Positions 3,861 through 34,900 of a DNA stretch of 64,000 bases are shown here, one piece after another. The stretch is taken from positions 129,897-193,896 of the forward strand of contig MNCI01002702.1 in NCBI GenBank assembly GCA_015680685.1, written 5' to 3'. Both the position numbers and the translations under genes were made by a program. How positions within the stretch are numbered: the stretch's first letter is position 1; each line of letters opens with the position of its first letter. The notes beneath the pieces are model-generated. The model did no database searches. It saw only the letters and a program-made list of their open reading frames with translations, and had not been told where the DNA came from. Origin of the DNA: Gnetum montanum. Lineage: Eukaryota > Plantae > Gnetophyta.

Positions 3861-3953
3861 CTGAACAGTAAACAAGAGAATGGATGTCAACTTTTCAAGT
3901 AAACAATTTACCAAAATATAAGTAAAAAGACATTGAGTCACACATCCTTTGAC

Positions 3954-4052
3954 CTCATGCCAGTACTTGACTTTTTCGCACGCCAGCCTTCTTTTCACTG
4001 CTAAAGTTGCCTTAGGGTTCTCAATTGCTAATCCAAGTTGAATATCCACACC
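3954..4052 (-). CDS. BRO1-like domain protein, coding exon 7 (GVDIQLGLAIENPKATLAVKRRLACEKVKYWHE)
   Basis: aacag|GGT ... GAG|gtcaa, 99 nt, with the highly conserved KATLAVKRRL motif. Confidence 0.93.
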
Positions 4053-5949: not shown

Positions 5950-6310
5950 AAATAATCCGACCTGAAAGACAGCAAACTTGCAAGAATATTTTGTCCTATG
6001 AAACCAACAATAAACCTGCAAGAGCAACCCATCCTATAAAATAGCAACACCCCTATTAGAATAATCTATTTTACAAGTCACTGACAAACCTGTGGGAGAA
6101 ATCTATCATGCACAAATACCAATGAATCTGCAAAAACAATTCATCCTGCAAAATAGTAATCAACCCTATAAGAATAATCTATCCTGCAATATGGCAACAA
6201 ACCCTACAAGAACAATCCATATAAGAAAACTATCTTGGGAAAATAATAAAAAACTGTAAAGAAAATTTTATGTTACAAAATAACAACAAACCCATAGGAG
6301 AAACTCATTC
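5950..6310. repeat. Degenerate ~40-bp tandem array
   Basis: About 8 recurrences of aaacc(t/c)gcaagaa(c/t)aatc(c/t)atcctgcaaaatagcaa-like units. Confidence 0.6.
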
Positions 6311-6878
6311 TACATATGCAAAATCATATATCTTACTAATTCAATCACAGATCCTCTTAATCTGTAATCACGTACTACTCCTAACATAACTTCTAGCCAC
6401 ACTTGGTCAAAGAACATCACAACCAGCTAAATCCACCAATGTCATTTGCTATCCTCAATCATCAATTACACCCTTCTCACCATCTTTTGATAATACTATT
6501 TACAAAGCTTTTTTGTTAACTATTGTAATAGACTTTTCACAATGGTTCTCTTTAACAAAGGTTTATTTGAAACCCTAGTGAAATGTCTTAGTTTTTGGGC
6601 CTCTAACAAAGGTTTTATTTTGACCCTCAATAAAAGTTGGCATCATCAATGACTAGATGTCAATGCATAGACATCGCCAATAGCCTTTGAATGTACTTGT
6701 GAAAAGCATATACATATGAGGTCAATGCAACACAAAAAAAAGTAATGTTTTGACACCATAAGTAAACTCTGTCTTTACACCATGAATTTCAGTCTTTCTA
6801 TCAAGTGAAAGCAATATATGAGCCAATGATTGTACCAAATCTTATTCCATGGACTTGTTGCAACATCCCATTCCCAGA

Positions 6879-6907
6879 TGTCATGGCAAATGTTAAATAT
6901 ATGTAAC
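6879..6907 (-). mobile_element. Terminal 29 bp of the 3' LTR of family-B copy 2, split off by the Athila-like insertion
   Basis: Reverse complement gttacatatatttaacatttgccatgaca matches the end of the copy-1 LTR (...catatttgatgtttgccatgaca, 17876) and continues the LTR broken at 29508. Confidence 0.75.
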
Positions 6908-7717
6908 TAGTGAAATTTGATTTGGTCAGTCACATTGACACATCAGTGTCAATGTATGCCTTGCTTCGTCAATGCATCAGCATTGACACAAAGCTAATAA
7001 ACACCTATATAAGTGTATGTACCCACTGCATTTATGGCAACATTTGGTTATACTCTTAGCTAGACTCTGTCGGTTTAATTCCAAAGTAGTAAGTAATACT
7101 TACAAGGTGCTTGCAAAGTGAACCAAGTGGATTGAATGGAATTTTATCTGAGTGAACATGTATTTGAACATATTTTAATGGCAACAATAAAATTAAGATC
7201 CATTTTCTTCATTGCAACACTTGGCTTAGCACTTCAATTTACTTTCTTGCAATTTACTTTAATGATTATTTAATTTCATGAACTTAGTTAATTAATCTAC
7301 TTTAGTCACACTAGCATTTGGTAATCCCACTAGTGGACACTTGATACACCCAACAATGAACACTTGGTAACCTAGCAACACTAATGCATGTTCAGGATAT
7401 GTATGGCAAGCTGGGAATGGATACTCTATGCCTAGGCTACACGAAATTTATTCTTCTAATATTTATATTCATTAGTTAGAATTTTAATATTTTAAATATT
7501 TTAATAAATAAATAATATATTAATTATGAGTCTCAATCACACTTAGCCATACGACTTAAGACTCACACAAATGTGATTGGGAAGATAGCGACCAATGACC
7601 TAACACTTAACTATCTAAGTCATCTAAACTAGTCTCAATCCACAAAATTCAACCAAATTGTGCATGGACGCTTGTGATCTGTATCATTGGGCATAGGGTC
7701 TATTGTGCCACTCATCA
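6908..7717 (+). repeat. A1 5' LTR
   Basis: Colinear with 28649-29507, e.g. the shared run ttgcaacacttggcttagcacttcaatttactttcttgcaatttactttaatgattatttaa. Confidence 0.88.
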
Positions 7718-7736
7718 TTTGCATCATTGCTAGGGA
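7718..7736 (+). promoter_or_regulatory. Athila-type primer-binding site (decayed TGGCGCCGTTGCCGGGGA)
   Basis: tttgcatcattgctaggga directly follows the LTR end; the equivalent site follows LTRs at 50162, 53276 and 34447 (minus strand). Confidence 0.7.
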
Positions 7737-7842
7737 TTGGTGTTAGGGTTTTAGATAGTTAAAATTATTGAAGGATTGTTGTTAGAGTCCAAAATCATTA
7801 ATCAATTAAAAGTCATATTTTATTCAAAGGTACAATTGCAAA

Positions 7843-10830
7843 ATGTCTTCTTCTCATAGGGCAAGTTCCCCACCTACTAATGATTTAGCAAAGGGATGTG
7901 ACAAAATCATTAAAAATCAAGACAAAGTTCAACAACAACTAAAGGTCATTTGCTAGCATCCAAACCCATACTATATAGATTACACTTTCATTCTTCACCA
8001 AGATAAAAGAATTGTGGTGAAGGAATCTAAAGGGCAGCATTGTGTTACCACTTGACCATTCAATTCCATCGATGCTCATGGTAGCATTGATGAAAGTGGG
8101 ACTTAGAAGCAAAAGCTCCTAACACCAAAGCTATTGATGAAATTTCCAGGTCCTACCAACCCATTGAGTCATAACTATGAAAAAACCTTTTCATGGAAGT
8201 ACACCATGAAGCCTCTAAGGGAAAGGGGGCTACTATTCTCTTGACATTGCAATTAGAAAAGGCAAATACTAATTATGAGCCTAGCTGATCTCAATGCCAA
8301 AATCCTCCATCTCCTCAGTGGAGATAATAGGAACTATTCATGGCTACGTTCAGCCTTGGCAACAACCAAGGCAAGGGGAGAACAAAACCCAACACAAGGA
8401 GTACTTCAAGGCCAATGTCTTCAAGTAGGCAACCAACAAAACCTCAATGTGGCCAAGGAAAGAGAGCAAGCTAACATAACTCTCTTAGTTCTCCATCTCT
8501 ATCCTCTTCATCCTCATTGTCAAGCTTTGACAGGGTAAACATGGCCAAGGAAAGAGTAGAAATAATCATATAGACTTAGTGGAGATGATAGAAGGGACTA
8601 TTGCAAAGATGGCTAGAAAGAAGATAGACAAGAACAAGAAGATGGGCATAGAAATGGACAGATGCATAGTAGGCAACATCATAGAAACATGGTCATGACA
8701 AGGACCATGACCATCATGATAAACCATTGCTTACTACCCCAATCATGAGAAATATAAGAGAGGCAATTTATATTCCTACAAGGCATCAGAGGAATAGACC
8801 AATTAAATCGTTAGATATGACCAATATCTCTAAGTTCAAGGAAGGTTACAACATGAACCCACAACATTATTTGCAAGCCTTCCATGATGATTGTGCCTTT
8901 TAGAACATTGAGAACAAATGGAAAAAGCTAAAACTCTTTTCAAGGACACTTATCAAAGAAATAAAAACTTGGTATTGATCTTTGAAACCACAATCCATTA
9001 GGAGGTGGAGTACAATGCTAGAATTATTTAATGACAAATATCAAATGTATTCCAAAGCATCTAATTTGAGGAAGCAAATTCAGGGGTGAAGACAAGGCAA
9101 TCATGAATCCCTTGATGCAACCTTGGACAAATGGATTCTAAAACAAAACAAGGGAAACTCTTAAGATCTATGCCTAAGAAAGATTAGTTACAAATGAGAG
9201 CCCATCAAATCCAAATGTTCATTGATCAAGTGGCAAAAGAGAAAGATGAACTCAAAACATCAGAGAGTGCAGAGGAGCACAACAAGAATCGCTCAATGCG
9301 CAAGAAAAAGGTTCGCCTTTGTAAGCCTAATGAAGGAGCACCATTGGAGGAAGTAGCATAGAGAAAAACCTTGCCTATCCAAAAATCAATCACTAAAATT
9401 TTGACAAAAGTTGATGAAATGTGAGACTCTACAAACAAAAAATTTCAAACACTGCTTGAGACCATGGAGGAGAAAGCAAAGCAAGGAAGAGCCAAAGACA
9501 TACAAGAAAAAGAAGAGAGATGCAGGCAAGGATTACTATTAGCAAAAAGGGAAAGCAATTGCAAGAGAAGAAGTTTCAAACTCCAAATCAAATGATGAAG
9601 GTTGTGACATTTGCCAATATGAATGTCCAAAGGGCTATTGCCTAGTAATGTCACATATCTAGGAGATTGGGGCTTACATCTTAAACCCAAAGTTCGTCAA
9701 GAGACAGACACCTAGGAGGTTGCCTTATCCTCAAAGTAGCTATCAAAAACCTTATAATCAGCAATAGTACTATCCAAATAGGGCACCACCACAACCTCAA
9801 GAGTACTATCAGTAGTGGCAAACCCCACAATTGTGGGGGATGCCACAACCAAGGTAGTAATACCCTTATAGGCTACCCAATATTTATGGGTATTATGTCT
9901 AACAACATGTATCTTACAATGGCTCTACCACATGTCTCTACTCATCACAACTATCCTCCAAAGTACCACAAACCTACCACTCCGTGGGTTGAATCTCCCT
10001 TGTCCTACGCTCCTCCTTACCAACACCCTCAACCTCACGCTCTAAACCCTTTTCCACCTGCTCCACCAATGCAAGGCAAAATCCCTTCGCAACCACAATA
10101 GCAAAATGCCACAAAAGTAGTGAACTTGTAGATGAATGGTAACTCAAGTAGCTCCAAGTGCAAGCCTCAAAAGTGCTTGTTTTTCAAGCCAACCAATCCA
10201 TCTAAACATCCGCATGATTCCAAGGCTATAGATTCCACACATGATACCTCTCAAACATCTAACAAGCCATCTTCAAACCAAAGTTATTCAAAAGTGCAGA
10301 CTGTCATGTTAACTCATGCAGTTACAAATTGGGTAAAATAGGAGACCTTCCCATAAAGAGAATTGATCTAGGAAGTCTCTTAATCTATTTGCAGGTTGCA
10401 GAAAATGCACCATGCAAGGCTCTACTAGACTTAAGATCTAGAGTTAACTTGATTTCACAAAAGATATATAATGTATGGAACCTACCACCACTCAAAAAAT
10501 GCAACACTCAGTTGGAGCTTGCAGACTAGTCCATCACTATTCATTTAAGACTAGTAAAGGACATTGTGACCAGCATTAGTGGTTGGTCATTACCTGTTGA
10601 TTTCCAAGTGATTCATGTAAACAATTGCAATGGAGAATTTCTCATCATCATGGAAAGAGCTTGGCTAAGCACTATTGATGCCAAGCTAGGAAGTAAGGAC
10701 CTTTACTTGGAAATCTCCAGGGAAAATAAGCATGGAATCGTGGAGAAGAAAAGAGTTTCATACATTGTGTACAATGACACAAGGTGCAACTACATGCAAA
10801 AGATTGGACCCTCTGACAAAGAACAATCAT
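7843..10830 (+). pseudogene. A1 gag (with long N-terminal extension) and aspartic protease, degenerate
   Basis: Gag core ISKFKEGYNMNPQHYLQAFHD...LKLFSRTLIKE; CxxCxxxHxxxxC-like knuckle near 9600; P/Q/Y-rich linker; protease CKALLDLRSRVNLISQ near 10410. Confidence 0.75.
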
Positions 10831-11239
10831 AACGTGCAGATTGTGTACTGAAGCAAAAAATGTGCAAAAGTGCCTATACACAGTAAGCACAAATCAAGAT
10901 GGCACCTAGTGGTTGAATCTAGATGAACGCTACAATTCAACTATGTGCATGGAACTAGCAGAAACCTTCACAAATGCATATATTGATAGAATGGACAAAA
11001 TGGAATAGCTTGGATGCCAACTCTCCGATGCAGAGCATAGACAAAAAGCAAGCATGGATTGGGAAGAGTTGGAAATTCCATAAACATCTAAACCAGAGTC
11101 CAAAACTACAACATTACCAGCATCACTTGAATGTGTTCCTAAAAAATGATAAACCGATAATTGTAAATGCTAAGCTCACAAAAAAATAGAAACAAAAGCT
11201 GCTGATGGTAGTGAACAAATGGCCAACAGCATTCACTTC

Positions 11240-11466
11240 GTCATGTGATGAAATTACAAGACTTGAATTGCACATATGCCAAAATCAAATCTATATGGAT
11301 CCTATCATTAAGCCCAAAAGACAACCACAGTGAAGGTTGAATCCCAAACTCAAACAAGTGTTCAAAACAGAGGTGGAAAAGATCCTTAAGGCTGGGTTCA
11401 TCTACACTGTTGTAGATAGTAAATGGATAAGTCCATTTGTCATCATACCAAAGAGAGATGGCCAAT
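11240..11466 (+). pseudogene. A1 reverse transcriptase, N-terminal part, interrupted by element C
   Basis: PKRQPQ*RLNPKLKQVFKTEVEKILKAGFIYTVVDSKWISPFVIIPKRDGQ resumes as WTICIDF at 22545. Confidence 0.85.
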
Positions 11467-12221
11467 TGGTGTAGGGACATCTCTTCCAAGCTCATGACAT
11501 CACTAGCAAAGGAACTAAGGTTTTGACAACTTGGTAGATGTCCAGGGCACTCAATAAACATCTAGTTTGGGAGCTGGGCACTTGCAAAAGACATCTTGGA
11601 GGCACAATAGACATCTTGCCTAAGAGCTGGGAGATTGGTAGGAGACGTCTTGCAAGTGGAGGAGAAGTTTTGCCTATGGTATGTACAGCTTGCCCAAACT
11701 AAAGACGGTTTTTCTACACACTGGGCTTAATAGAGAGACATCTTCATAGACCAGTAGACATCTTGTTTGGCCATAGTAACTTTCTAAAGTGGTAGTTCCA
11801 AGCTAGGAAACAACCAGGAATGTCGAGATTAATGTGGGAAAGTTTTCCTAAAAGTTTTAGCTTTATTTCATAATAAAAAATGGGTCTATGTTGCATGTTT
11901 TGTGTGATGAGAGTTTGTGTGGTATGAGGGGGATCTTGGTAGTTGTATGCCAACCTTGTATGAGAGGAAAGAGATCCAATTCAATTAAACCTTGCATTGA
12001 GGTCAATCATGTGTGATTATAGAGCCTCCTACTCTACAATATTATTGAGTGTGTGTGTTGTTGTGTGATGATTTGTGGAATTGGGGTTCCATTGTAATTG
12101 TATTCCTCTTCCAACATTAATAGAAAATAGCTAGTTTTCTTGTTTTCTAGCAAATTATTTGTCTTCCATACGTTCTAGATTCGGTGTGTAGGGCTAAACA
12201 AATTAGAGTGACTATGCTTTG
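11467..12221 (+). repeat. Element C 5' LTR
   Basis: Colinear with 21717-22539, e.g. aaagagatccaattcaatt(a/g)aaccttgcattgaggtcaat. Confidence 0.9.
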
Positions 12222-12225
12222 AAAT

Positions 12226-12237
12226 TGGTATTAGAGC
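12226..12237 (+). promoter_or_regulatory. tRNA-iMet primer-binding site of element C
   Basis: TGGTATTAGAGC, one mismatch to canonical TGGTATCAGAGC, just after the 5' LTR. Confidence 0.88.
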
Positions 12238-12305
12238 GTAGGTTTGTTGTTTAGATTTTGTTTGTGGATTTTTGTGTCTATTTCAAATAGCTATTAAGAA
12301 GAAAA

Positions 12306-13018
12306 ATGTCTAAGCCTTGAATTGAGATATCGAGAGCATGAAATCTGGTTTTCAATTGATGGTTGAACAATTGGATGAAATCAGTGCTAAGGTGGATAGA
12401 AATGCAAGTCCTAGCCATATTCAATCTTGTGGTCATGATGAGCATTCTCGCTAAAGTTTCTTAGCCTGATGGAAGGAGAATAGATAAGGAAGAAAAGCAT
12501 TCTTGTTATGGGAGTGTGAGAACCCATCAACCTAGGGTTCCAAGGAAAAGGAATCCAAGTCCTCATGTTAGAACTCCAAGGTATCTGTCTAGGACATCTT
12601 CTTCTTCTCATGGAAAATTGGACAATGAAGATGAAGCAAAACTTGCCATAGCTTTCAAAAATGCTGCAAGACTTCTTTATGTGGAATGAAAAACTTTCAA
12701 TGGTATGGACACCACCAATGCCTTTAACAGCTGGGTAAAGGTACTTAACAAGCATTTTGAGCTTAAAGATGCATCAAATCATTTGATGGTAACAACTCCT
12801 AAATCCAAATTAGAAGATATGGCTTCAACTTGATGGAAAAAAGAGTCTCAAAGCTATGTGAGACAAAATGGGCAACCTATCAACGATAGGTCCTTGATGA
12901 AGTATAGATTGAAACAAAAATTTGAACAATTTAAGTAGACGCAAGAAATGATCACGAACCTTAAATTCCTTAGATATGGAGACAAGGATGTGAAAGAATT
13001 CTATATTGAATTTTCATT
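12306..13018 (+). pseudogene. Element C gag, N-terminal part
   Basis: KTFNGMDTTNAFNSWVKVLNKHFE...*WKKE...LMKYRLKQKF...YGDKDVKEFYIEF, a retrotrans-gag pattern; breaks off at about 13018. Confidence 0.7.
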
Positions 13019-14509
13019 AGGCCAAGGTTAATTGGGAGGAATCGTCTCAACGAGTACTATAAGTTGGATATGGTTTCAAGGTCTGAAAACTAATTTGAAT
13101 TTCCAAAATTCTAAAGAACCAAGCTAGCTTATTTTGCCAAATTAACATTCCTAGGCTGACACATAGACAAAATGATCACTTCTAGATAACTTCAATGATT
13201 ATAAATGATATACCAACCCTTAAACGTAAAACATAATAATTTTACCTTATGATTTAGTAAGTATGATATATTATTATCCTCTCACATCAAGATTATGTTC
13301 TAGGTATTAAGGATAAGCAAGACATCACAACATTACCCCTCAAGTATTGGTTTTTGTATGAATTGTGTTCTTTTGCGGGCATTCCAAGGGAATTTTGGTT
13401 ACAGCAAAAAATGAGGGTACCGCACATGGCCTACCATCCATTCCATACATGCATTTTCAAAAGTGTCTGAGCCCCCAAAGTCAAGCTTCAACACTTCCAC
13501 CTATTTTCCACATTCCATGTTGAAATTTCAGACCCTTAACTTTTTCCCAACCCTTTTCTAGGGTGCTTTGTTTTATTTTTGTATTTTGCTCATCCATTCC
13601 ACCTCTATGTGTGTTAACAGTATCATCTACGAGTTAAGGAGGCATTGTTCTCTTGGCTTGGTAATCGCATAGTTGCTAAAATTTAATATAGTTAATTATA
13701 TTAAAATCCTTTTATAGTTAAAAAAATTTCAGGCCGTAGTTCGCAAGGGCCATGGAGGCCCAACCCACATGCCACATCGTCAATCTTGCTACGCTACCAC
13801 TTGTGTCGTGCCATGTCTATACGCTACCACTTGTGTCGTGCCATGTCCTGGGCTGTGCAGAGGATGAGCCTTGCAAATGATCACATAGGCCCTACAGAGG
13901 GTCGTGCAAGCCCGCCTAGGCCGCATAGGCCCTAGTTTTTGCATATTGTTTCCTTTGCAAGGAATATTGATCTATGCTAATGTGCAAGCTACTATGCCGA
14001 AGGCAGACGTGGACCCACCGCTGGTAATGGGAGCAGTGATGACGTTTGAGGCATTAACAGTAGTGGTATGGCAGGTGCTGACGGAGGCACTAGGGATGGT
14101 GGCAGCGTAGCGGATGAAGCTGATGTTCATCGTGGATGGGTAGGCATGGTTCAATCTGCCACTACCATGCGACTACTTCGGCAACGACATCGTCCTAACG
14201 ACAACCACCACGGAGGCCGGGGAACTGTGTTCGCAACTACTCACCTACGGCATGGCAATGCTGCAATGCGTTGTGCACACCATAACAAACATCTTCATAT
14301 GCTTCACCATCGACTTCCACTCTACTCCACCACACTGTCGCTTCCACACATCACTTGCTTTCGCCACCTCCATGCAGCATTGCTTGTTCCCCCACCATCG
14401 TTAACTGTTATTGTCACCGGTGCTACCTTTCCCTCTGCCTGCGCAGACATCGCTGCAATTGCCACCACCATCACCTACGCTGCCACTAAAAAACCCGTCG
14501 GAATTTTTG

Positions 14510-14885
14510 CTAGACCATGGTATCCGTAAGCACCACAAACACCATGGGCACCATGGAATCTTGCCTCCCACAAAGCCCTACGGACACCATGGAATCCCAT
14601 CTCCCACGGAGCTCCATGGACATGATGGAATGCTACCTCCCACAAAGCTCCATGGACACCACGGAGCAGCATGGAATCCCTCCTCCCGTGGAGCTCTACG
14701 GACACCACGGGCATCATATCCCACCTCCCACAAAGCCCCGCAAACATCGTGAAATTCTGCCTTCCACAAAGCTCTGCGAACAATGTGGAATGCCGCCTCC
14801 CATGGAGCTCTATAGACACCACAGGCCCCATGGAATCCTGCCTCCTATAGAGCCCCGTGGACACCATGGAATCCCGCCTCCCGTT
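14510..14885. repeat. GC-rich tandem array, 36-46-bp units, about 9-10 copies
   Basis: Unit resembles ccacggagctccatggacaccatggaatcccgcctc; it explains the overlapping repetitive ORFs at 14411-14939. Confidence 0.85.
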
Positions 14886-15011
14886 AACCATAAAATTTTA
14901 CATCAATTAATGCAAAATTTAAAAACACTAGCAAAATAAGCAGTAAATTTGAATTTAAAACATGGGCAAAAATTTTCCAAAAAAGAATTTGCCACTTTAG
15001 CAGCATGTGAG

Positions 15012-15083
15012 ATAAGAATTCCATAATTAAGTGTGCTTGCTCTGGAGTAGTACTAAGATGGGTGACCTTTCAAGAAGTCTCGT
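15012..15083 (+). pseudogene. 5S rRNA-derived segment covering the Pol III internal control region (A box, IE, C box)
   Basis: ataagaattccataattaagtgtgcttgctctggagtagtactaagatgggtgacctttcaagaagtctcgt versus recalled plant 5S ATCAGAACTCCGCAGTTAAGCGTGCTTGGGCGAGAGTAGTACTAGGATGGGTGACCTCCTGGGAAGTCCTCGT. About 56/73 identical by hand; mismatches are mostly C>T and G>A. Confidence 0.88.
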
Positions 15084-15732
15084 TTACTTAAAAACTTCAA
15101 ATGCCATAATTTTTTATTTCGGAAGCCTTTTTTGGCAAACAATGAGTCGTTTCCTATAGATTTCAACCTCCTAAACACAATGGTGAAGTTGGATCTACAC
15201 CATGAAACTCCAAAAAATTGCTTTTACTCCTTGCCCCATACAATGCCTCAAGACCCTCAAAAAACTTAATTTTAGCATAACTTGGGCATACAGGGTCCAT
15301 TTCTAACATATGAATAGTCATTTCTAACATTTTTCAACCTTCTAAACTCAATGGTAAGGTCAAATTTATCATCAGTACCCGATAATTCAATGATACCTTA
15401 AATCATGCTTTTTAAGATCACAACTTAAGGTAACAAATCATGCCTAGCAAATTAATTGTTGAAACTAATAAATTTAACCTTTTGGGCCTTAAGATTAAGT
15501 GCCTAACCTTTATAGATAGTCTTAAGATCACTAACCCCTGGTGTATCATTAGTTACATTGTTGGAGTCCATGTTCTACGGGGGGTAGAAAGGTCGTTAAG
15601 AATCAAATAATGTAGCTAAATGTTACCAACAAGATTAGTCGGAGAATCAATTATTGAATCAATTGGCGAACCAGAATCGTTAAGAAGATGTATATCAATT
15701 GATCCTGCAATCAAATTATATAGAAGAACAAC

Positions 15733-16883
15733 ATGGAAAGTAATAATCTCGTTCCAACAAGGGGTATGATACCTATATAGAGTAATGGCCCAAAAGAGAA
15801 TCCATGAATGAGAATGAAAGTGGCAATATATAACATGCTTGCAAGATCCCTAGCCAGTGAATACACTATGTCCACCATGGGCCTTGAATATAGAGTTACA
15901 AGATTTGGATGTTGATGTCTTGTGCCTACAAGAAGTCTTGCCATGGGAATTCCTATATCAATTCCAAACGAACATGGAGAAAATGGGATACATAGGTATC
16001 TATAAGCAAAAAGATTCTTGTGGAAGTTCTCTTTCGAGCCATACAAATTAGCCTATTGTAGAAATCACAACATGGATGGTTGCACAATCTTTTATAAAGA
16101 ATCCAAGTTTGAATTAGTACAAAGATTTGAATAGAATTTAGAAGATAAGATTTTTGAAATTCCAAAACTTCAAATCATGGGAAAGAAAGATCAATCAAGG
16201 TTCCAAAGAAACCACATTGTTTTGGCTGTGATACTAAAAATCCATTTATCATGAAGATGTATATGTGTAGTTAACATATATTTAATTGCCAAATCAACAT
16301 GTCAAGATGTCAAATTGTGCCAAGGAGCATACTTGATTAAGCAAATAGAGGAAAGTTTGAAGAATAAGCTATTCCTAAGACATATCAATCCAAGTGCCAT
16401 TTGTCATTTGTGCAAACTTCAATAAAAGTTGGAAGTAGTATTTATCAATTCTTAAAATATGGATGTGTCAAAGAATCCTTGGAAGATAAACCTGATTTGA
16501 AGAAGATGTTTCCATCAATTCAACATGCAATTCCATTGGCCAATGCATATTGTGCTTACTTCGAATCTTCAATAGATAAATCAAATCCTAGAATTCGGAA
16601 ATAGATGATGTTGATGGATAGTACTCACCAAGAACCACAGTTTACCAATTACTTTGCCATGATTAATGAAGATGGGTCAACAACATTCTTCATTAAGACC
16701 CTAGATTATATTCGGTGCAACGTCTGATTCTTCCTAGTTAAAAAGTTACTAGAGTTAATCTCTAAGGATGTTGAGAAGAAACAAGATCAAGCCCTTCCAT
16801 CCTAAACAAGATCATCCATTCATATACCACTTATGGTAGAACTACAACTACTTCCATTGATTCCCAAGGTTTATCAAGATTAG
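15733..16883 (+). pseudogene. Intronless CCR4a/b-like deadenylase (EEP nuclease domain), element-borne, disrupted
   Basis: In order: VPTRGMIPI, MKVAIYNMLA, LCPPWAL, DVLCLQEV, GYIGIYKQK, MDGCTIFYK, DVKLCQ, VPFVICANFN, IPLANAY, EPQFTNY, KTLDYI, LLELI, QALPS..SSIHIPLMVEL. These match plant CCR4 motifs YNIL, YCPPWAL, VCLQEV, DGCATF, DVKLWQ, VCGDFN, LPLVSAY, EPLFTN, TLDYI, ALPSPEWSSDHIAL. Confidence 0.9.
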
Positions 16884-17323
16884 GAAGTATCTTAACCTTA
16901 CTTTTATTTATGATTTTCTTAATTTTCTTTATTATTTAATTTATATTTTAACTAGATGAGTAAAATATCTAAGGTAATGAAAGTTGGGAATAAAGGATTT
17001 GCCCTACCTTCACTTAGGTAACCAAATACGAGTTGCACTTTGTGTGACCTTGGTTAGTACTAGTGATTAGTGGTTGGTAAATCTTTAATTCACTTCTTAT
17101 CATTATCTTAGAAAATCATGTAAGTATTGATAAAATAATATTTAATACTTATATAAATTCTTCTCATATATGCCTTGTTTGCAAAATAAGCAAGAAACAA
17201 CTTCAAGTCCAAAGGAGAAATCAAATTATTGAAGCACAAGAGCATAAAAGAAGCATTGGAGCTGGAAAAAGGATAGTGAACATGGACTCATTCGAGGAAG
17301 AAAAAAACCTAAGGGGGATAGAT

Positions 17324-17876
17324 TGTAATGTCCCCATTCCCAAATGGTGCTGCTACATAACAAAGATGGAGCCTCTTCATAACAGGTATTATCATTATCG
17401 TAACAAGAGCCAAAAGGGAACTTGTAATTAAGACCCAAAAGGGCATGTTGTAATAATGGACATGTCTCTTGAGGTGACCTTTGGGGGTTTCAAATAAGGC
17501 AGTTATACCCGAGCATAGAGGTTGTATCAACATGGAGTTGCAGAGTCAGTAAAGGCAAGTAACAAGTGTTAGGTGAAGCGGGATAGGAAGAGGACTAGCC
17601 ATCCCTTTTGGCCGATTGTAGGCCTAACTAGGGTGGCAATGCTAGATTACCTTTAAGGATAGATGCCAAATAAGACCCCAAGTAACACTCTCAAAGCAAA
17701 GCATGATCTAGATGCACTATTCCACATCAATAAAGCATACTTTTCTCTTTTCTTCTACATTTTCCCTATTATTCTGTTTACGCATAATGTTGAATAATAC
17801 ATATATTTGACATTTGGTCTATTATCTTCTTACGCATAATGTCTAATATAACACATATTTGATGTTTGCCATGACA
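17324..17876 (+). repeat. Family-B 3' LTR, copy 1 (553 bp)
   Basis: TGTAATG...CATGACA terminal inverted ends, preceding PPT, internal AATAAA near 17730; homologous to 29925-29508 (minus) plus 6907-6879 (minus). Confidence 0.78.
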
Positions 17877-20800
17877 TCCAAGAATAGGATGTCACAAAAA
17901 CAAGGGAGGCAAGGGTCAAGATAGTAGCTTATCCAAGATACAGTGCTTCAAATGTGGAGAGTGGAGACACAAACAATGAAAATGTCTACTTGAAAAGGCA
18001 GCCAAAGGCAAGGATGTACAAACCTTGGAGACAGAGGAATCATTAAGCCAAGCTCTTCAAAGAGGTAATCCTAATACTTAAAAATTAAGGAGGTTTATGA
18101 ATTGAATTTATGTGTATTTATAGGGAATGTGAATAGAGGAGATCATCCAACAAGAAATTTAGGACTAGATGTTTGATTAGTGGGGAATGGATTCATATTT
18201 TGATTGATGGGGAAGCCCAAGAAGATGTTATTTCCTCCAGGATAGTTGCTAAGTTGGGTTTAGTGACATATTCTCATAAGATGCATTAGTTGTCTAAAGT
18301 TTTCTCTCAAGAGGTAAAAGAACAATGTATTTTAAAGTTTAAAATTAGGAGTTATCATGATGTTGTGAGATGTGACATGTTGCTTATTGATGGGGCAAGA
18401 AATGTGTGGAGTGTAGCAAGAGAAAATGAAATTCAATAGTTGATTCCTATGACTGATGAACAAGTGAGGCAATAAACCTAACTTAAATACTTCCTTAATT
18501 CTTCTTGGGGAGAGAAAATACATTAAGGAACATAATGAGGCAGGTTTTGGATTTGTGATTGTATCAATTGTTACTTCTAACCATGATGTTGTGCAGGTAG
18601 AACTTCCACCAAGTGTACTAGGCTTGAAGGAGTGATTTCCCAATGTGTTCATAGGGGAATTTGATAAGCTGCCACCAATGAGGAATGTTCAATACCATAT
18701 TGACTTCATCCCTAGTTTTACCAATCCAAATGAGAGAGCATGCCAGATGGCACCAAATCAAAGGGCTGAATTGCAAAGGCAAGTAGAGGAGCTACTTGCG
18801 AATGACTTTGTGAGAAAGTCAATCACTCCTTGTGCAAATCCAGCAGTGCTTGTGCCAAAGAAGGACAATGACAACTAGAAAATGTTTCCTATTCTAAGGA
18901 TAGATGATAAGATAAGATAATAGTAAGGTAGATGTTTCCTATTCTAAGGATAGATGATATCCTTGATATCCTTACCAATGCTGAGATTTTCGGCAAAATT
19001 GATTTGAAAAGTGGGTACCATCAAATTCGGGTCACTTCTAGTCATAAATGGAAGACCACATTCAAGACACCTAATGAATTGTTTAAGTGATCGGTTTTGA
19101 GATCATAATGGTCCTACCACATTCATGAGGTTGATGCATGCCGTTCTCAAGGATTTGATTGGTAAGTGTTGTATTGTCTTCTTTGATAATATTTTGGCGT
19201 ACAGTTCCAATGAGGAGGAGCATTTGGAACATGTGAGGAGTGTATGTCTCAAATTGGAGGAGACACAGTAAGTTGTCAACATGAAGAAGAGTTATTTCTT
19301 CAAAAAGAATATGACATACTTGGGACATGTGATTTCTAAAAATAAAATCAAGATGGAAGCTACTAAGGTAAAGGCTAGTAGAGATTGGCCAACTGTTAGA
19401 AATGTTGTGAAGGTGAGATCATTTCTTGATGTAGCAGGTTTTTACAAAAAAATCATCAAACATTTCAGTGGTATATTAGGGCCTATGTTTGCGTTGCTTC
19501 AGAAAAATCAAGATTTTAAGTGGGGTGATCAAACCCAAAGGAGCTTTGACTTGTTTAAGGCAAAAATAACTAGTGAACCAATGCTTGCAATACCAAATTT
19601 TCAGAAGCTTTTTCAGGCAGAGGTGGATGCAAGTGGACTTGCCATTAGAGGGGTGCTTTCACAAGAAGGAAGATTTATGGCTTTATTTTTAGAAAAAATA
19701 AATGGATCAAGGCAGAAATACAGTGTGTATGAGAAGAAATTGTATGCTATTCTTTAATCAATCAAGCATTTGAGGCATTATCTGTTAACGAAGGAGTTCA
19801 CCTTGATGGCTGACCAGAAAGCACTTCAACTACTCAATTCCCAAAAGAAGTTGTGGGTAGCACAATTGCAGGAATTCAATTTTGTGCTCAAGCATAAGAG
19901 TGGGAAAACCAATGTGGTAGATAATGTATTATCTAGGGTGCATGTGGTGAATTTCAGTGTTCCTTGTGGAAGGTATGAATGATTTTGCTGATTTGTATAA
20001 ACATGATTCAGATTTTGGATAGGTTTGAGGGAGCCTTAAAGAGCCATTGTTGAGTAGGATAGACCAATGGAGAAACTATCACATCCAAGATGAACTGCTG
20101 TTCAAGAATGGGAAGGTTTGTGTTCCCAATTGTGATTTTAGATGAAAGATTTTGATTGAAAAACATTGTGGTGGCATGGCAGGTCACACGAACAAAGATA
20201 AGACATTGATGCTTGTGGATTGGCACTATTTTTGGCCTGGAATGGCCTCTAAAGTCTCAAAATTTGTGAAGGAGTGTTTGACATGTCAGAAATTCAAGGG
20301 AGGTAAACGAGTTGATGGACAGGATCTGCCCTTGCCAATTCCGAAAGGACCTTGGCAATGTGTGTCAATAGACTTTGTGAGTAGGATTCCAAAGACCAAA
20401 AATAGGAACGATGCTATCCTTGTGGTGGTGGACAGGTTCTCCAAGATGGCACAGTTCATTCTGTGCAAGAAGGTGAATGATGCATCTCATATTGCAAATT
20501 TGTTTTTCCATTATGCTGTGAGGTTGCATAGGATTGTTTTGAATATTGTTAGTGAGAAAGATTCCAAGTTTAATAGTCAAAAAAAAAATTATTTTTTTTT
20601 TGAGAAAATATTCGGGAGTATATTACTGACAAAATATAGTACATGAAATTAGAAACCGTGGGTCATCAGCAATGGCCCTCATTGGGTGGGGAAAAAACCC
20701 CAAGCCACAAACCAATCCAACACCACAACAGTCATGCCAAAGCCACAAACTCCCCAGAAAACCCAGCAAATGCTTTGTGGGGGGGGGGGGGGGGGAGGGG

Positions 20801-21690
20801 AGAGACAGTGCAGGGGGAGCATGAAGGAGATCCAATAGTCATTTTTGAAGGTCCCTTTGGAAGATTTTAGGAACAAAGTTGAATTTTTCTAATGCATATC
20901 ATCCACAATTTCATAACCAAACTAAAGTGGTCAACAAATATTTGCTTAATATTTTGAGGTGCTTATATGAAGGATTGTCCAATAGGTGGAAAAAGTTATT
21001 GTCATGTTGAGTTTTCCTAAAACAATGTTTTTCATGTTGCTATTGGGAAGAGCCCATTTGAAGCTAATTATAGTTTCTGTTCCATGATGGTGGATACTTT
21101 GAGAAGCTTTGATAGAGAGGCTCAACTGCGTGTAGGCTTTATGAAGGAGACAATAGATCTTCATGCTCAGGTGAGTGCAAATCTAGAGAAGAAAGCTAAA
21201 GAAAGAGCCCAAAAGAGGAATGAGGCCAAGAAGAAGCCTAATTTCGTTGTTGGTGATCTTGTTTGGGTGCACTTGAAGAAGAAGAGGTTGAGGGGTCTAA
21301 ACTTCTCAAAACTGAAGGCCAAGAAGAAGGGTCTTTTCAAGATAAAGGCTGAAATCAATTAATGCCTTTGAAATTAACTTACCCAATGATGTGGATATGT
21401 CTTTTGCTTTTAATGTTGCAGATCTTGTGCATTACCATGGACCAGAAAATGATGAAACCTTAAGGGGCAGCATCGATGAGTTGAAGGGGACCATTGACAA
21501 GTCCAAATCTTCATAGGAAAGGAAGGCAATTGTACTCAAGAAGAGAGAAGCTTACAGCACTCATAGAGTAAAGAGGCATGAGTACTTGCTCCATTGGAAG
21601 GATCAAACTATTGATGGCGTTGTATGGGTCAAAGAGACTAAATTTGTTGAATGGGGAATTACTTCTACCCCTAGTTCCTTGTTCACCTAA
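17877..21690 (+). pseudogene. Element C zinc knuckle, PR, RT, RNase H, integrase and chromodomain (degenerate)
   Basis: CFKCGEWRHKQ*KC; ILIDGEAQ; PCANPAVLVPKKD; KIDLKSGYHQIRV; VFFDNIL; VDASGLAIRGVLSQ; HCGGMAGH...CLTCQ; PWQCVSIDFV..VVVDRFSKMA; KKKGLFKI; EYLLHWKDQTIDGVVWV (about 21585-21630). Confidence 0.92.
20580..20833 (-). mobile_element. 5'-truncated non-LTR (L1-like 3' end) insertion in the element C integrase
   Basis: TSD AATAGTCA at 20572-20579 and 20834-20841; A-tail on the minus strand after ...taatatactcccgaatattttctc. Removing it restores DSKFNSHF*RSLWK. Confidence 0.8.
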
Positions 21691-21716
21691 GTTCACTTTT
21701 TGAAGGGTGGGAGAGT

Positions 21717-22539
21717 TGGTGTAAGAACACCTCTTTTGAGCCCCATGTCATCCCTACAACTAGAGGAATGAAGGTTCTGACAACTTGGTAAACATCTAGG
21801 GCACTCAGTAGAGATCTTGCTTGAGAGCTAGGCACTTGCAGAAGAAATCTTAGAGGTATAGTAGACATCTTGCCTAAGAGCTAGAAGGAGACATCTTACC
21901 CAAGAAGGAGACGTCTCTAGGAAAACATCTTGCAAGTGGAGGAGACCTCTTGCCTTTAGTATAGACATTTTGCCCAAATTGAGATGTCTAGCTTGCATGT
22001 TGGACTTGACAGAAAGACGTCTTTCGAAACCTATAAATGTCTTGTTCAACTGCGGCAACTTTCCATAGTGGCAATTCCAAGATGGAAAACCATCAAGAAT
22101 GTCAAGATCGAAAGGGGAAAGTTTTCCTAAAAATTTTAGCTTTGTTTCTTGATAAATAATGGGTCTGTGTTGTATGTTTTGTGTGACAAAAGTTTCTCTA
22201 ATCAATCGTGTGTGTGGTATTGGCCATTATGTGTCTGTGTAGGATCTTGGTGGTTGTACGCCAACCTTGTGTGAGATTAAAGAGATCCAATTCAATTGAA
22301 CCTTGCATTGAGGTCAATTATGTGTGATCGTAGAGCCTCCTATTCTACAATATCATTGGGTGTATGTGCTGATGTGTGATGATGATCTATGGGATTGTGG
22401 TTTCATTGTAATTGTATTCTTCTTCCAACATTAATAGAAGGTAGCTAGTTTTCTTGTTTTTTAGCAAATTAGTTGCCTTGTATGCATTTTGGATTTAGTG
22501 TGTTTGAAGGGTTAAACAAATTAAAGTGACCCTACTCCA
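21717..22539 (+). repeat. Element C 3' LTR, preceded by PPT at 21702-21715
   Basis: gaagggtgggagagt|TGGTG ... ctcCA|ccaat. Confidence 0.9.
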
Positions 22540-22544
22540 CCAAT

Positions 22545-24770: not shown

Positions 24771-24833
24771 AAAATTCCAAAAGCACAATCATTAATTAAT
24801 TACTTCACAAGAAAAGTATTCATGGGGTACCAT

Positions 24834-25024
24834 TGGAAAGACATGTTACCCATGCCTAAAGGTAAGCTAATGCCAAGAATCTCAAGGTCTGTTGGACAAA
24901 TTTCATCATATAACTGGAAAGATATGTTAACCATGCCTAAAGGTAAGCTAATTCCAAGAATCTCAAGTTCTCTTGGACTAATTTCATCATATAACTGTAA
25001 AGATATGTTAACCATGCCTAAAGG
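24834..25024 (+). repeat. 81-bp tandem repeat (about 2.4 copies) downstream of A1 integrase
   Basis: tggaaaga(c/t)atgtta(c/a)ccatgcctaaaggt starts at 24834, 24915 and 24996. Confidence 0.85.
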
Positions 25025-28400: not shown

Positions 28401-28648
28401 TATGCCTTGGTCCATTTTTGTACATGTCCATTTTTGTAATGTGTTTACATTTTCTCAAGTCAAATTGTAAAATACTCAAATAACTTTTGTAATGTAGCAC
28501 TTGAGTCAATCAGTTAGTCCTATTACTCCCACAATTTTGTAAACTCAATCCTAATTTTGTTAACTCAAGGATGAGTTTTCAATTAGTTGTAGGACTATGA
28601 TGAAAGTTGATTTAGTCAAGGATGAGTTTTCAATTAGTTGTAGGACTA

Positions 28649-29507: not shown

Positions 29508-31907
29508 TCATTTGACATTATGGGTAATAAAATGTAAAAGGAAACAAAAAAGAACATTATTAAGAGGGGGAAATGGAAATAAATGAGTATATCCGAGTCA
29601 TGCTCCGAAGGTTCCTTTCTTTGGTAATCCAACACTACTACCATGGTAGGCCTATACCTAGCCAAAACAGATGGCCAATCACCTTCCTATCCCACTTCAC
29701 CTAGCACCTATTACATGCTTTTACCGACTCTGCAACTTCATGGTAGTGTAACCTATAATCATTGGATATATATACCTTAAGTCAAACCCACAAAGATCAC
29801 CTCAAAAAACATATCCATTATTACAACGTACCCTTTAAAGTCTTATTACAATAATTACATCATTTGATATAAAGTGAAACCATTATGATTACAAAATGGC
29901 ACCATTTAAGAATGGTGATATGACAAACTACCCCTGGCCTCACTTTAACTTTTGTTCATCCTTGAGCGAACTTGCATTACGGTTCTTTCTTCAGTCTCCA
30001 ATGCTCCCTCCATGTGTTAGTGCTCCAATGCTTACATTTCTCATTTAGAAATGAGAGTTGAATATTTAAAATTCTCCTGCTTATTCTACAAATGAAATAT
30101 AAGTGAGAAATATTCATGAAAAATAGATCTTATTATGACAACAATTCACCTCAATCTCTAGGTAATACAAGAGGTGAATTATAGGTCTGCCAACCACCAA
30201 TCACCAATCCTAACCAAAGTATACTATGTGCATCTTGTATCTCTAGTTACCCAAGAAAATATACTTGTCTAATTTAGAAATGTAAATTAGATAAATAAAG
30301 AAGAATAAAAAATGAGGAATAGAAGCAAAGTTATGAAATCCCCTAATATTCATCAACCTCCAGGATGACAAGTGTATTTGTAGTTCTTTTATATCGTCAA
30401 ATGAGCTTGTTCTAGATGGTAGTGCTTCATCTTGCTCATCAACTTCTTCCTTAGGAATTAACTCCAGTAGCTTGGTAACTTGGAAGAATCATGTATCATA
30501 CCAAATGTAATTTGGGGTCTCGACGAAGAAAGATGTTAACTTGTCTTCAGTAATCATGGCAGCATAATTAGTGAAATGCGGTTCTTGATGAACACTATCC
30601 ATTAGCATCTTCTATTCTTGAATCCCAGGATTCCACCTATCTATTGAGGATTCGAAGTAAGCGGAGTATGCACTGCCCAAAGGGACCCTACGATGGATTG
30701 AGGGAAATTTCTTCTTCAAATTCGGCTCCTCTTCCAAAGAGTCTTTCACACTTCTGTATTTTAAAAATTGATGAATAAAAATTTCAATTTTCACATTAAC
30801 ATCTCCAAAAAAGATGAATGATACTAGATCAAGACTAGTATAGGTTAGGAATAGCTTGTACTTCAAGCGTTCATTGATTTGATTAACCAAATAAAAATAC
30901 TTGACAAAGTCTATCATCTAGGCATGTTAGGTCAACGATCAAATGTGTGTTGACCACGTGAACACACCTTCCTAATAACTGCATTTTAAGTAACAATGTT
31001 AACGCTATGTGGCTTCTCTAGAATTTTGATCATTCATTCTTCCCCATAACTTGAATTTTTGTAATTTCGGCTTTCTAATCTTCTTTCAAACCTTTATATT
31101 AACTTGATCTTGGCTTCTTTTTAGAAGATCGTGCAACCATCCATGTTGTGATTCAAGCAATAGGCTAGTCTATGTGGGCTTGAAAAAAGAATCATCATAA
31201 GAACCTTTTTTCTTGTAGACATTTTCGTATCCCAACCTTCTTAGATCATATTTAAATTGGTATAGAAATCCAATAGCAAAACTTCACATTTAAATCATGT
31301 AACTCTACAAGGATACATGTACCTTAAAAATACACTATGTTGCAACCTTCATATATATTCTTAAATTCTATCCTGACTCATTATCTCTCACATATATCAT
31401 ACACCTTGTTGAGACAAGGTTATGATTCTCCATGATGATTTATCTCTATTAAATGTTATGGTTTTCTGTTAGGTTGATTTAAGTCTTCCTTGCATTGTTG
31501 GTTTACAAACTAATTCTTTAATTACTTGATTCTTTAGGTAAGTAGCGATTTGGCTTCATTCCCTAGGCTTTTAATGACCTATCTAACCCCCTTAAGACAT
31601 TCACTCCAGCAATGTAACTAATGGCCAACTAGGGTTCATAAACCTAGGGTCAGTTGTAGGGGTTAGAGGCCTATGTCTAGCTATAAGTATAACTTAATTG
31701 CCTAATTCTAAGGCCTAAAATGACTAAAAAGGGTTAAATTGTTAATCATAACCTTTAAATTGTTAGACATGGTTGGTCGATTTAGGTTATAGCCTACTAA
31801 AGCATGATTTAAATTGTCACCTAATTATCAGCTTCCCAAACGACCAATCTAACCTCACCATTGGATTCAAAAGGCTAACAAATTTTAAAAATGACTATTT
31901 ATATATT
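29508..31907 (-). mobile_element. Family-B LTR element copy 2 (5'-truncated): CCR4-like ORF, PPT, 3' LTR (29925 to 29508, continuing at 6907-6879)
   Basis: Minus strand reads aagtgaggccaggggtagtt|TGTCATATCACCATTCTTAAATGGTGCC, homologous to TGTAATGTCCCCATTCCCAAATGGTGC at 17324; ORF flanks are also homologous. Confidence 0.8.
30343..31433 (-). pseudogene. Second intronless CCR4a/b-like deadenylase ORF, disrupted
   Basis: MENHNLVSTR..MKVAT, NMDGCTIF, VVNTHLI, FIFFGDVN, HQFLKYRSVKDSLEEEPNLKKKFPSIHRRVPLGSAYSAYFESSID, HQEPHFTNY, LLELIP, ALPSRTS. Confidence 0.88.
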
Positions 31908-34900
31908 AACAACAAACATCAAATGCCCACTACCATTAACTTGTAGTTGTTGGTAGTGTCTTCCATTTGTGTATTTATGGCCCTAGTTACATTCTTTTGT
32001 TGAGGTTGTGTTGGCAATTCTCCTTGCATTGATGGCAGTGGAACTAGAGGAAGTGGATTAGGAGGTTGTTGAGGACGTTGTCTTGTGAGGTGAGGCATGT
32101 CAAATGGTGATTCTGCATGTGGAGTTATAAGTCAGTGATATTCAACAAGATAGTAGTGACAAGAAGTATGGACAAAGGTATTGCCAAAATAAATAGGTTG
32201 TTGCACATAGTAGCCATATGGATTGGGTTGTCTATGGGGATATTATTGTCTCAATGGTGGTATCCCCCACAACTATGAGTTTTACCATTGCTGATTGTAT
32301 TGTTCCTGAGATTGAGGATAAGCCCCACTAGGATAGGATGGTTGTTGTTGATAGAGTTGTCTACAGTTGCCTTGTAGGTAAGGCAACCTCTTAAGCATTT
32401 GCTTTTTGATGTTTATGCCCCTAATTCTTATAGGTGATTCATTATGGGACAACATCCTTTAGGATGTTCATATTGGCATAGGTCACACCCATCTTCACCT
32501 TCCAAACTGGAATCAACAACCTCTTGCACAGAAATAGCTTTCCCTTTCCCTTTATACTTCTACATATCACATTTTGTTTCCTTGTTTTATCTTTTTATTC
32601 TTTTCTTTGGTGAGGGCTTTCTATGTGTTCTCTACTATCTTTAGTGTTGTTGCAAACTTCTCATCTACAAAATCCTACATCTTTTTGACCTTTGTTGCAG
32701 TGTCAAATACAAATATTTGAATTGGTAAGGTCTTTCTTTGAATCAATTCTTTCATGGATTCTTGTTATTGTGTCTCACAAACTCAAACATCTATTTTGCA
32801 CAGAGATGGATCCCTATTATACTCCTCTGCAAATTTTGTCTCTGTTAACTACTTAATCAATTAACCTCTATATACGATGGGCTCACATTTTAGACAACCA
32901 CCCCTAGACATACACCCCAAGGGTCTCTCTTGTTTTATTTCTTCACCTTCATTTATGAGCCTAAATTGTTCCTTCTAAGAAAAGCCATGCCCTGGAATCT
33001 ATGCAAGAGTGAATAATATGTACTCATGGCTACATCAAGCGACTCATGGCTCCCTTGTTTCCATCCTTTGATTTGTTTTCTTAGATTTGACAATCTCAAA
33101 TAAGTCTGGTACTTGTCACTAAAAAGTTCTAGCATTGTGCTCCATCAGCAAATAAAATCTACTTCTAGAGATCAATACCAACTTTTTGCTTCTTTAATCA
33201 ATGTCCTTGAGAACAATTTAAGTTTTTCCCAATGATTCTCAATATTTTGTAGCACACAAGCATTATAGAAGGCTTGTAGATACTGTTGTGGATCAGCATT
33301 ATAACATCCCTCAAACTTTAAAATGTTGTTCATGTCAAGTCGCTTGATGCAACTATTCCTTTGGTGCCTTGTCAAAATGTAGACAGCCTCTGATATTTAT
33401 CATGCTTCTAGTAGCTAGTAAGGGTTCATCATGATCTTCGGGTTCATCACAATATTTGTTGTTGTGGTGATAGCCTCTTAGATGTTTATCTTCATTCCTT
33501 CTCCTATGCCTTCTCTCTCTCGCTCTCTCCCTCTCTATCTTCCTCTTAATCTTTATCATGATTTCTATCTCTTCTATGACATCTATCTTGATCTCTTCTT
33601 CTATCTCGATCAAGCATTCTGTCCTAATCCATTTGTGGAGTTTTTCTCCATGTCTATGTTTGTCTTCGTTAGAGTCTATCAATGAGGGTTACAAAGAGGA
33701 TGGAGGACTTGGAGAATGATTGGATTGCTCTCCTTCTACACTCCCTTGATTCTTCCTTTCTAGATCTATTGGAGGCCCTAGGCCTTTGGTTCCTCCTTGC
33801 TTTGGGATTTCTCCCATCCTTCCGAGAGTTTCTGCTAACACTAAACACAATCTCTGTTGCATAGGATCTTCATTGTACAAAACAAGTGGTCAGGAAGTAG
33901 ATGGATGATGGTGAGACTTTTTAGACTGATATTCCACATCTCCCTTTTCTAATGGTAGTATCACCTGAGACACTACATTTACCCTTCTCTTATTCATACT
34001 TAACTTCCATGATAGTGTATGTTCTGGCTTGGGCTTTAGTCATGTTCTTTGTGACTTGATAGCCTCCATGTGTGTAACCAAGACCACTAGAGCATCTTGA
34101 AGCATAGATGGAGATAATCAGTTTGGTGGTAATAGAATGTTACCCTGTAAATCTCTATCAGAACGATTCATTTTGATTAAAAATAGAAGTGAAATCTAGA
34201 TAATATGGATTAGTATGAGCATAGGAAATCCTTGGTTGTATTGGCCCATTCTAATTTTCCTCAGGATAGATTATATCGTTACTCTCATTACTATCACTTG
34301 CAGGTGGAGAATTCGCTTTGTGTGTCAAAGCCTAAGTGTGTGTTTGAAAATAGTATATCTTTTACCAGGTATATTTTGAAATGCTGAGACAATGAACTTG
34401 TATAATATCAACTAAAATATTGACACCATCCCCGACAATGGCATCAATGATAAATGGTCGTCCAATCATATAAGTCATAGAAGCATACACATGCGACCAT
34501 ATCGTAATCTGTAAATGAGACAATATGAACTTTAGATAGTTAATACAAGAGTTGATTGTTGTTTTCTTACTGGAGTTAGTGGCAATCAAAGTAATGATGG
34601 TTTAACTTGCAGTAAAGTATAAGATGTGATGATGTTTGGCTCTTACATAATAAGAATAGAACACTGTAAGATGAATATTGATTTTAATTGACTAGAAGAC
34701 AATGGAAAGTAAATCTAGTCTAGCCTAATGGTGATAAGCATTTGTTCCTAATCTTCCATTCACGTCCTAGGCTCATACAACTATTACTAGGATTACCAAG
34801 TAAATTTTTACTAGGTGAACCAAATGATATTACCACTGGGTTACCAAATAACTATGCTTAACACTCAAGATTAATGTTAGTCTGCCAAATGCTAATAGAC

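Follow-up and report, generated by a model that had tools for sequence, protein, structure and literature searches.

Remnants of a CCR4-type nuclease gene in an old, high-copy LTR retrotransposon family of Gnetum montanum

The maize element Bs1, a retrotransposon with long terminal repeats (LTRs), occurs in low copy number and carries fragments of several genes. The capture of host genes by LTR elements is well known, and a review of the subject lists no EEP/CCR4 domain among the captured sequences (PMC7264820). Only rarely have extra enzymes become fixed in the LTR retrotransposons of plants, and every such case known marks a host pathway relevant to the life cycle of the element. In Phalaenopsis, autonomous Ty3/gypsy elements of 25 kb possess an extra open reading frame (ORF) encoding an AlkB-type N6-methyladenosine (m6A) demethylase that is active in vitro, and an escape from host RNA surveillance has been proposed for these elements (PMC9289625). 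A screen of 121 angiosperm genomes that was anchored on reverse transcriptase (RT), and by which elements devoid of pol would be missed, identified 15 extra domains, none of which was an EEP/CCR4 domain (PMC9289625). In the present study, we analyzed a stretch of 64,000 nucleotides (nt) of the Gnetum montanum genome (contig MNCI01002702.1, positions 129,897 to 193,896 of the forward strand; referred to below as the window, in the coordinates of which all positions are given), where two loci, copy 1 on the plus strand and copy 2 on the minus strand, contain remnants of a CCR4-type nuclease gene next to an LTR. These loci are most probably fossil, 5'-truncated copies of one old and very abundant LTR retrotransposon family, the internal region of which carries a captured CCR4-type gene that was once under selection. 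Text searches of the literature for CCR4 or EEP cargo in LTR elements returned no description, and no earlier account of an LTR family of high copy number whose cargo is a selected enzyme of RNA decay was found in the literature searched.

The Gnetum family resembles Bs1 in that an intronless host coding sequence lies in sense orientation inside an LTR element, was probably taken up via mRNA in reverse transcription, and is accompanied by no pol in the part that is seen. In contrast to Bs1, the sequence taken up comprises an entire catalytic domain together with a start codon of its own, is present in copies of the order of 10^3, and was under purifying selection between lineages. A host-origin, RNA-acting extra ORF fixed in an LTR lineage is also the feature shared with the orchid elements, whereas no gag-pol is seen here and the enzyme appears to be a CCR4-type nuclease instead of a demethylase. 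Regarding the CCR4/CNOT6L/Angel/nocturnin clade itself, the likeness consists of a colinear order of motifs and of the best and only matches in the PDB for two pieces of the gene; the remnants differ from the members of this clade in having neither the N-terminal partner-binding region nor an intact frame, and in the mutation of several catalytic positions per copy, and their C-terminal half has decayed too far to give matches in databases.

An earlier note on this stretch had described an intronless CCR4 ORF with the full series of catalytic motifs. Both remnants are indeed intronless, with no intron-sized gaps in either copy, but neither is an ORF: copy 1 is distributed in pieces over three frames with at least six in-frame stops and three or four frameshifts, and copy 2 has accumulated many stops and frameshifts together with a deletion of approximately 50 nt over the CLQEV region (a gap of 52 in the bin 15850-15949). 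The pieces of copy 1 are colinear with a CCR4-type EEP nuclease from a SYNxL-like start to an SDH-like end, and the motifs KVAIYNMLA (SYNxL-like), CPPWAL...DVLCLQEV, DGCTIFYK, VVNIYL, CANFN, LANAY, EPQFTN, LDYI, and ALPS...SIH are read in this order. The motif series is thus readable, with each catalytic motif surviving in at least one of the two copies and the DGCxxF, EPxFTN, and LDYI-type motifs in both, but the catalytic set is incomplete in each: in copy 1, GDFN has become ANFN and SDH has become SIH, and in copy 2, these motifs read GDVN and FDD, with CLQEV among the deleted residues. The ATG with which each of the two genes opens is equivalent (MESNNLV in copy 1, at 15733; MENHNLV in copy 2, at 31433), and the MExxNLV start that the earlier note had reported for both was recovered. 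As judged by reading, no coding similarity was seen upstream of this ATG in either copy, so that the N-terminal region which docks CCR4 to CAF1/NOT is lacking. A tblastn search of the window identified these two CCR4-like gene copies only.

The assignment to the CCR4 clade was evaluated with individual pieces of the gene. For the piece 15854-16048, a phmmer search of the PDB returned six matches up to E = 10, namely, Angel2, CNOT6L (three entries), yeast Ccr4, and CNOT6 (E 0.023-0.88), and the alignment to CNOT6L spans the stretch from CPxWAL to the CLQEV region; the CPxWAL motif aligned in this manner is the sole hint of a CCR4a/b type rather than an Angel- or nocturnin-like type. The piece 16006-16131, which covers the next colinear position, DGCxIF, matched only CNOT6L, CNOT6, and nocturnin up to E = 10 (E 0.067-1.4), and a weak match of the former piece to the Pfam family Exo_endo_phos was also obtained (E = 0.029). 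The individual matches to the clade in the PDB are weak (E 0.02-1.4), yet specific to it, and their weak statistics are attributable to the single pieces being short and decayed. Searches of the PDB with phmmer or profiles using five later or N-terminal pieces and two alignments of two sequences gave no CCR4 match, and ten further gene pieces gave no match in Pfam. Judging from these sequence comparisons, an origin from the CCR4 clade is well supported for the N-terminal half of the gene, and the C-terminal half is assigned to the clade by motif reading only.

The similarity between the two copies extends well beyond the gene. An alignment of 15250-17651 with 31962-29623 gives approximately 65-67% identity, non-coding flanks and terminal repeat included, and the two copies have in common approximately 480 nt upstream of the ATG, a spacer of approximately 440 nt after the gene, a purine tract, and the terminal repeat (Table 1). 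The polypurine tract (PPT) lies directly upstream of the 3' LTR in both copies. Two further statements of the earlier note were accordingly borne out: the gene stands in sense orientation upstream of a PPT and a TG...CA LTR, and a second copy with homologous non-coding flanks exists on the minus strand. Within the LTR, identity reaches 76% (17422-17651 against 29851-29623), and matches of lower quality continue as far as 29510. In copy 2, the LTR starts with TGTCAT at 29925 after the purine run and ends with ...GTTGCA, and both copies end at the same LTR terminus, beyond which the DNA is unrelated. The borders originally given for copy 1 need to be corrected at both ends, since the LTR extends 20 nt beyond the position 17876 that had been taken as its end, and since the position 13019 is no boundary of the element but falls inside the gag gene of another element, G2, which runs to approximately 13350; the high-copy family starts from approximately 14945. 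No pieces of gag or pol ORFs were found in 14945-17323 or 29926-31962, and the 5' part of the element is gone. No A tail follows the gene after 16883.

Table 1. Positions of the two family copies, their parts, and the surrounding sequences in the window.
Feature	Position	Strand	Basis
Copy 1, retained 5' internal non-coding part	14945..15732	+	Jump in contig depth; copy 2 aligns from 15250
Family internal region, 5S rRNA-derived segment (similarity), same orientation as the CCR4 gene	14998..15084	+	Rfam RF00001
Copy 1, intronless CCR4-type (EEP) nuclease pseudogene	15733..16883	+	Translations; PDB phmmer; Pfam
Copy 1, 3' internal non-coding spacer from the gene to the PPT	16884..17293	+	64-70% identity to copy 2 in 100-nt bins; high depth
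Copy 1, PPT region; core purine run 17311-17322, one base before the LTR	17294..17322	+	Sequence read; equivalent run before the copy 2 LTR
Copy 1, 3' LTR, 573 nt, TGTAATG...GTCACA	17324..17896	+	Loose contig ends, depth, copy 2 homology to the same end
Copy 2, retained 5' internal part	31434..31962	-	Homology to copy 1 ends at 31962, beside the truncated gypsy gag X2 (32197-33469, minus strand)
Copy 2, CCR4-type pseudogene, same ATG context (31433 to approximately 30340)	30340..31433	-	Translation; tblastn piece-to-piece identity 52-69%
Copy 2, spacer and PPT region	29926..30339	-	Aligned to 16884-17323 of copy 1
Copy 2, most of the 3' LTR, interrupted close to its terminus by the gypsy element X1, which inserted later	29518..29925	-	Homology to the copy 1 LTR
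Copy 2, last approximately 52 nt of the LTR, displaced 22.6 kb by X1 (6911-29517)	6859..6910	-	17851-17900 against 6904-6855, 78%, E = 5e-5
Host element G2 (Ty3/gypsy), gag interrupted by low-copy DNA and copy 1	11467..22540	+	LTR pair, target site duplication, primer binding site, domains
Low-copy DNA between the G2 gag and copy 1, outside the repeat family	13334..14944	.	Depth; single contigs span 13334-14974 with 0-4 differences

The abundance of the family was assessed by mapping sequence data to 12950-18900 at a likeness of at least 80%; the data consisted of contigs from two source-species DNA runs, contigs of one related species, and one oligo-dT RNA run. The summed contig depth was 1-20 over 13547-14541, which is the single-copy level (unique contigs have a depth of 5-10), and 1-316 over 13348-14939 as a whole, and rose to 1,600-21,000 from 14940 on; across 14940-17924, it was 1,600-78,000 per 199-nt bin. 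The CCR4 part has a mean depth of approximately 3,000-5,000 times the unique level, which, because summed contig depth does not equal copy number, is to be read as "of the order of 10^3" only. The CCR4 segment is a regular internal part of a high-copy LTR family, not one of two stray retrocopies, and the family is not limited to two members, with a depth of this order over the gene and its flanks.

The same reads delimit the LTR. In more than 100 contigs per DNA run, the letters directly before 17324 and behind 17896/17897 are unrelated (agreement of approximately 0.4), with such loose ends being present in three runs, and the depth increases approximately 2-fold on crossing 17324, from approximately 23,000-31,000 to 48,000-70,000. 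The loose ends at both edges, taken together with the doubled depth, place the LTR at 17324-17896 and give the appearance of a discrete LTR that is present twice per element, from which we infer that the internal region was enclosed by two LTRs. The letters behind 17896/7 in the contigs form a weak consensus resembling TGGTATCA.AG, the primer site for the initiator-Met tRNA; with an agreement of only 0.41-0.43, such a primer site behind the family LTR is suggestive only. Just before 16424, where copy 1 is broken, the sequence of more than 100 contigs per run (agreement of approximately 0.8) translates to the catalytic motif CGDFN, and most members of the family keep this motif, which copy 1 has lost.

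The internal region also includes a piece similar to 5S rRNA, located approximately 650 nt upstream of the gene. Its match to RF00001 reached 24.8 bits, short of the gathering score, which is 38 (E = 0.91 in the whole window and 0.005 in a targeted search of 351 nt), and part of the depth in this bin possibly derives from 5S genes or Cassandra elements. Cassandra elements are TRIMs (miniature retrotransposons with terminal repeats) that have a 5S rRNA-derived promoter in their LTRs (PMC7215508), and the Gnetum family is similar to them in being an LTR family of non-autonomous appearance with a 5S-derived segment and possibly an initiator-Met primer site. However, the present element is kilobases long and carries a gene, and its 5S-like piece is internal, with no 5S match in the LTR (17324-17896). 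An assignment to the Cassandra type was rejected on this ground.

Regarding selection, the differences between the two copies over the aligned coding part amount to 27.5%, 21.9%, and 39.5% at codon positions 1, 2, and 3, respectively (chi-square p = 4e-6), and the same test was flat in two non-coding controls. The Nei-Gojobori (NG86) estimate of omega was 0.24 (bootstrap 0.15-0.36; 303 stop-free codons), to be compared with a neutral baseline of the method that is here approximately 0.5-0.85, below 1, and this value is lower than all eight controls: the two wrong frames gave 0.84 and 1.19, and six flank phases gave 0.47-0.85. As the two lineages diverged, purifying selection acted on the gene. 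The excess of third-position changes, the low omega, and the conserved start codon indicate that part of the divergence arose under protein constraint, before each copy inserted and decayed. Purifying selection argues for a stable cargo and against a one-off retrocopy, as the earlier note had proposed; this proposal stands in that the gene is a regular part of an abundant LTR family, and requires qualification in that both copies in the window are dead and 5'-truncated.

Concerning expression, 84% of the RNA reads mapped to this region continue into unlike sequence, and the reads represent relatives and transcripts of the LTR, with no evidence in the oligo-dT run for expression of the gene. 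In the RNA run X24, very uniform loose ends (agreement of 0.94-1.0) were observed within 17440-17660, at 17440, 17475, 17638, and 17658, and one or few transcribed loci appear to carry a related variant of the LTR.

A probable history of the family may be outlined as follows. The internal region carries, in sense orientation, an intronless sequence that corresponds to the EEP catalytic domain of a CCR4-type poly(A) nuclease of the host and lacks the N-terminal region of the host protein; this sequence opens with its own conserved ATG and is followed by the spacer of approximately 440 nt, the PPT, and the 573-nt TG...CA LTR. The gene was most likely acquired a single time, in the course of reverse transcription, with a spliced mRNA of the host as its source, and would then have moved along with the element, the propagation of which probably occurred in trans by the proteins of an autonomous element, considering that no gag or pol is present in the part seen here. 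Both copies decayed neutrally after insertion, and they are now inert. As for the past role of the product, presumably a deadenylase, the most likely activity would be that of a 3'-5' poly(A) exonuclease which stood on its own, outside CCR4-NOT, and acted on RNA of the element or of the host. Such an enzyme might have shifted the RNA from translation to packaging or decay bodies, or limited its entry into RDR6-dependent silencing; any effect of this kind on poly(A) tails or silencing is speculative. Decay factors are host cofactors of Ty elements in yeast, and the proposed mechanism leans on what is established about CCR4 and about the part that decay factors play in Ty retrotransposition and in plant silencing.

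A more far-reaching version, which we offer tentatively and hold to be rather doubtful, would be a family without pol, the sole protein of which was a selected, catalytically active, stand-alone CCR4-type deadenylase that acted on its own transcript or host RNA to favor packaging or escape from silencing, and which reached thousands of copies as a parasite of the gag-pol of other elements.

A selected deadenylase cargo in a family of approximately 10^3 copies would link the control of poly(A) tails or mRNA decay directly to the success of retrotransposons in plants. A warning for annotation would also follow, in that thousands of CCR4-like fragments in this genome would be transposon remnants and not genes.

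Several observations weigh against the interpretation of the two loci as members of an LTR family with a once selected CCR4 cargo. The 3' LTR is present and two LTRs are indicated by depth and loose ends, but an enclosure by two LTRs is not visible in the window copies, and sensitive BLASTN and Smith-Waterman searches of the window with shuffles found no 5' LTR partner for either copy. No primer site of the family was found in the window, and the loss of the 5' boundaries in both copies leaves no pair of target site duplications to compare. In copy 1, the place of the expected 5' LTR and 5' internal region is occupied by 1.6 kb of low-copy DNA (13334-14944). The C-terminal half of the gene had no match in the PDB, Pfam, or the ESM Atlas, and the longest stop-free piece (101 aa, from copy 2) had 0 matches among 1.84 billion protein representatives. 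The selection estimate is derived from one pair of decayed copies, with a neutral baseline already below 1, and the abundance is known as an order of magnitude only. Coverage in the oligo-dT run was 32-45 reads per strand over the LTR and 1-9 reads, on both strands, over the gene, the latter being near background.

These points are pertinent to the explanation that competes most seriously with a selected cargo, namely, that the CCR4 sequence was a passive passenger, a piece of a host gene, captured in the manner of maize Bs1 or Pack-MULEs, that was merely amplified with the element and never of service to it. Gene capture of this type has precedents, both window copies are dead, and RNA over the gene is near background. 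However, the excess of third-position changes and an omega of 0.24 against 0.47-1.19 in the controls are not expected under neutrality, the context of the start codon has been kept between copies that are 33% apart, and most family contigs retain CGDFN. We therefore consider a passive passenger to be unlikely, and a cargo that was once selected remains our preferred reading.

Two other explanations would remove the gene from the LTR family altogether. If the two loci were ordinary processed pseudogenes, derived from a host CCR4 gene and situated by chance beside LTR fragments, they would be intronless and decayed as both copies are, but would not be expected to have in common approximately 480 nt of non-coding sequence on the upstream side and 440 nt on the downstream side, along with the PPT and the LTR; moreover, no poly(A) tail follows the coding end, and the gene and its flanks together have a depth of the order of 10^3. 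Contradicted by the family read depth and the shared flanks, this explanation was rejected, and we assign it practically no probability. An apurinic-type endonuclease of a long interspersed nuclear element (LINE), rather than a CCR4 derivative, was also considered as the identity of the EEP remnant, since LINE endonucleases share the Pfam family PF03372 with it and a LINE remnant is present in the window at 2-1474. The only PDB matches were, however, to Angel2, CNOT6L, CNOT6, Ccr4, and nocturnin, a PPT and an LTR instead of an RT lie downstream, and the DGCxxF, EPxFTN, and LDYI-type motifs are found in both copies, on the basis of which a LINE endonuclease was rejected as highly improbable.

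The surroundings of the two copies provide information on the order of insertions. The element G2 has an LTR pair at 11467-approximately 12224 and 21716-22540 (74% identity), a perfect 5-bp target site duplication, CCAAT, on both sides, a primer binding site of the initiator-Met type at 12226, and the downstream domains RT_RNaseH_2 and Integrase_H2C2, and is a very old but structurally clean insertion. Its gag resumes with a zinc knuckle right after 17897; with gag on both sides, copy 1 is located inside the gag gene of G2. G2 in turn lies inside X1, a gypsy element of 22.6 kb including nested inserts, the LTRs of which (6911-approximately 7725 and 28652-29517) are approximately 77% identical and the RNase H and integrase of which continue after G2; no clear target site duplication was found for X1. 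X1 had itself inserted into the LTR of copy 2, the remainder of which is at 6910-6859 on the minus strand. Since copy 2 predates X1 and copy 1 postdates G2, the two copies represent independent insertions at different times. A gypsy gag, X2, beside copy 2 was considered as part of the same element as copy 2 and was rejected because copy 1 has a different high-copy sequence at the equivalent place.

The low-copy DNA between the G2 gag and copy 1 has no similarity to the family LTR, and the unique contig that covers it ends at 14974. It includes 36-nt tandem repeats at 14490-14890, which code for His/Pro-rich units of 12 amino acids in overlapping frames, and another part of the genome holds a stretch paralogous to 13373-13667. 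An 81-nt tandem duplication (24834-25025, 93% identical) is located within the 3' region of X1, and gag fragments related to X1 occur at 32197-33469 (minus strand), 50014-52372, and 54280-55357.

Elsewhere in the window, runs of N representing assembly gaps are located at approximately 1880-2000 and 49300-49850, and the LINE remnant at 2-1474 (minus strand) consists of endonuclease-like and RT-like ORF pieces. An LTR element at 52539-61652 has a pair of repeats (52539-53201 and 60766-61424, 86% identical), a partial tandem duplication (60493-60774 and 61425-61652), and gag- and protease-like remnants. A further LTR pair, at 38939-39294 and 41405-41775 (77% identical), has a primer site of the initiator-Met type at 41402-41391, and the stretch 38939-41775 (minus strand) is likely to be a non-autonomous LTR element of approximately 2.8 kb.

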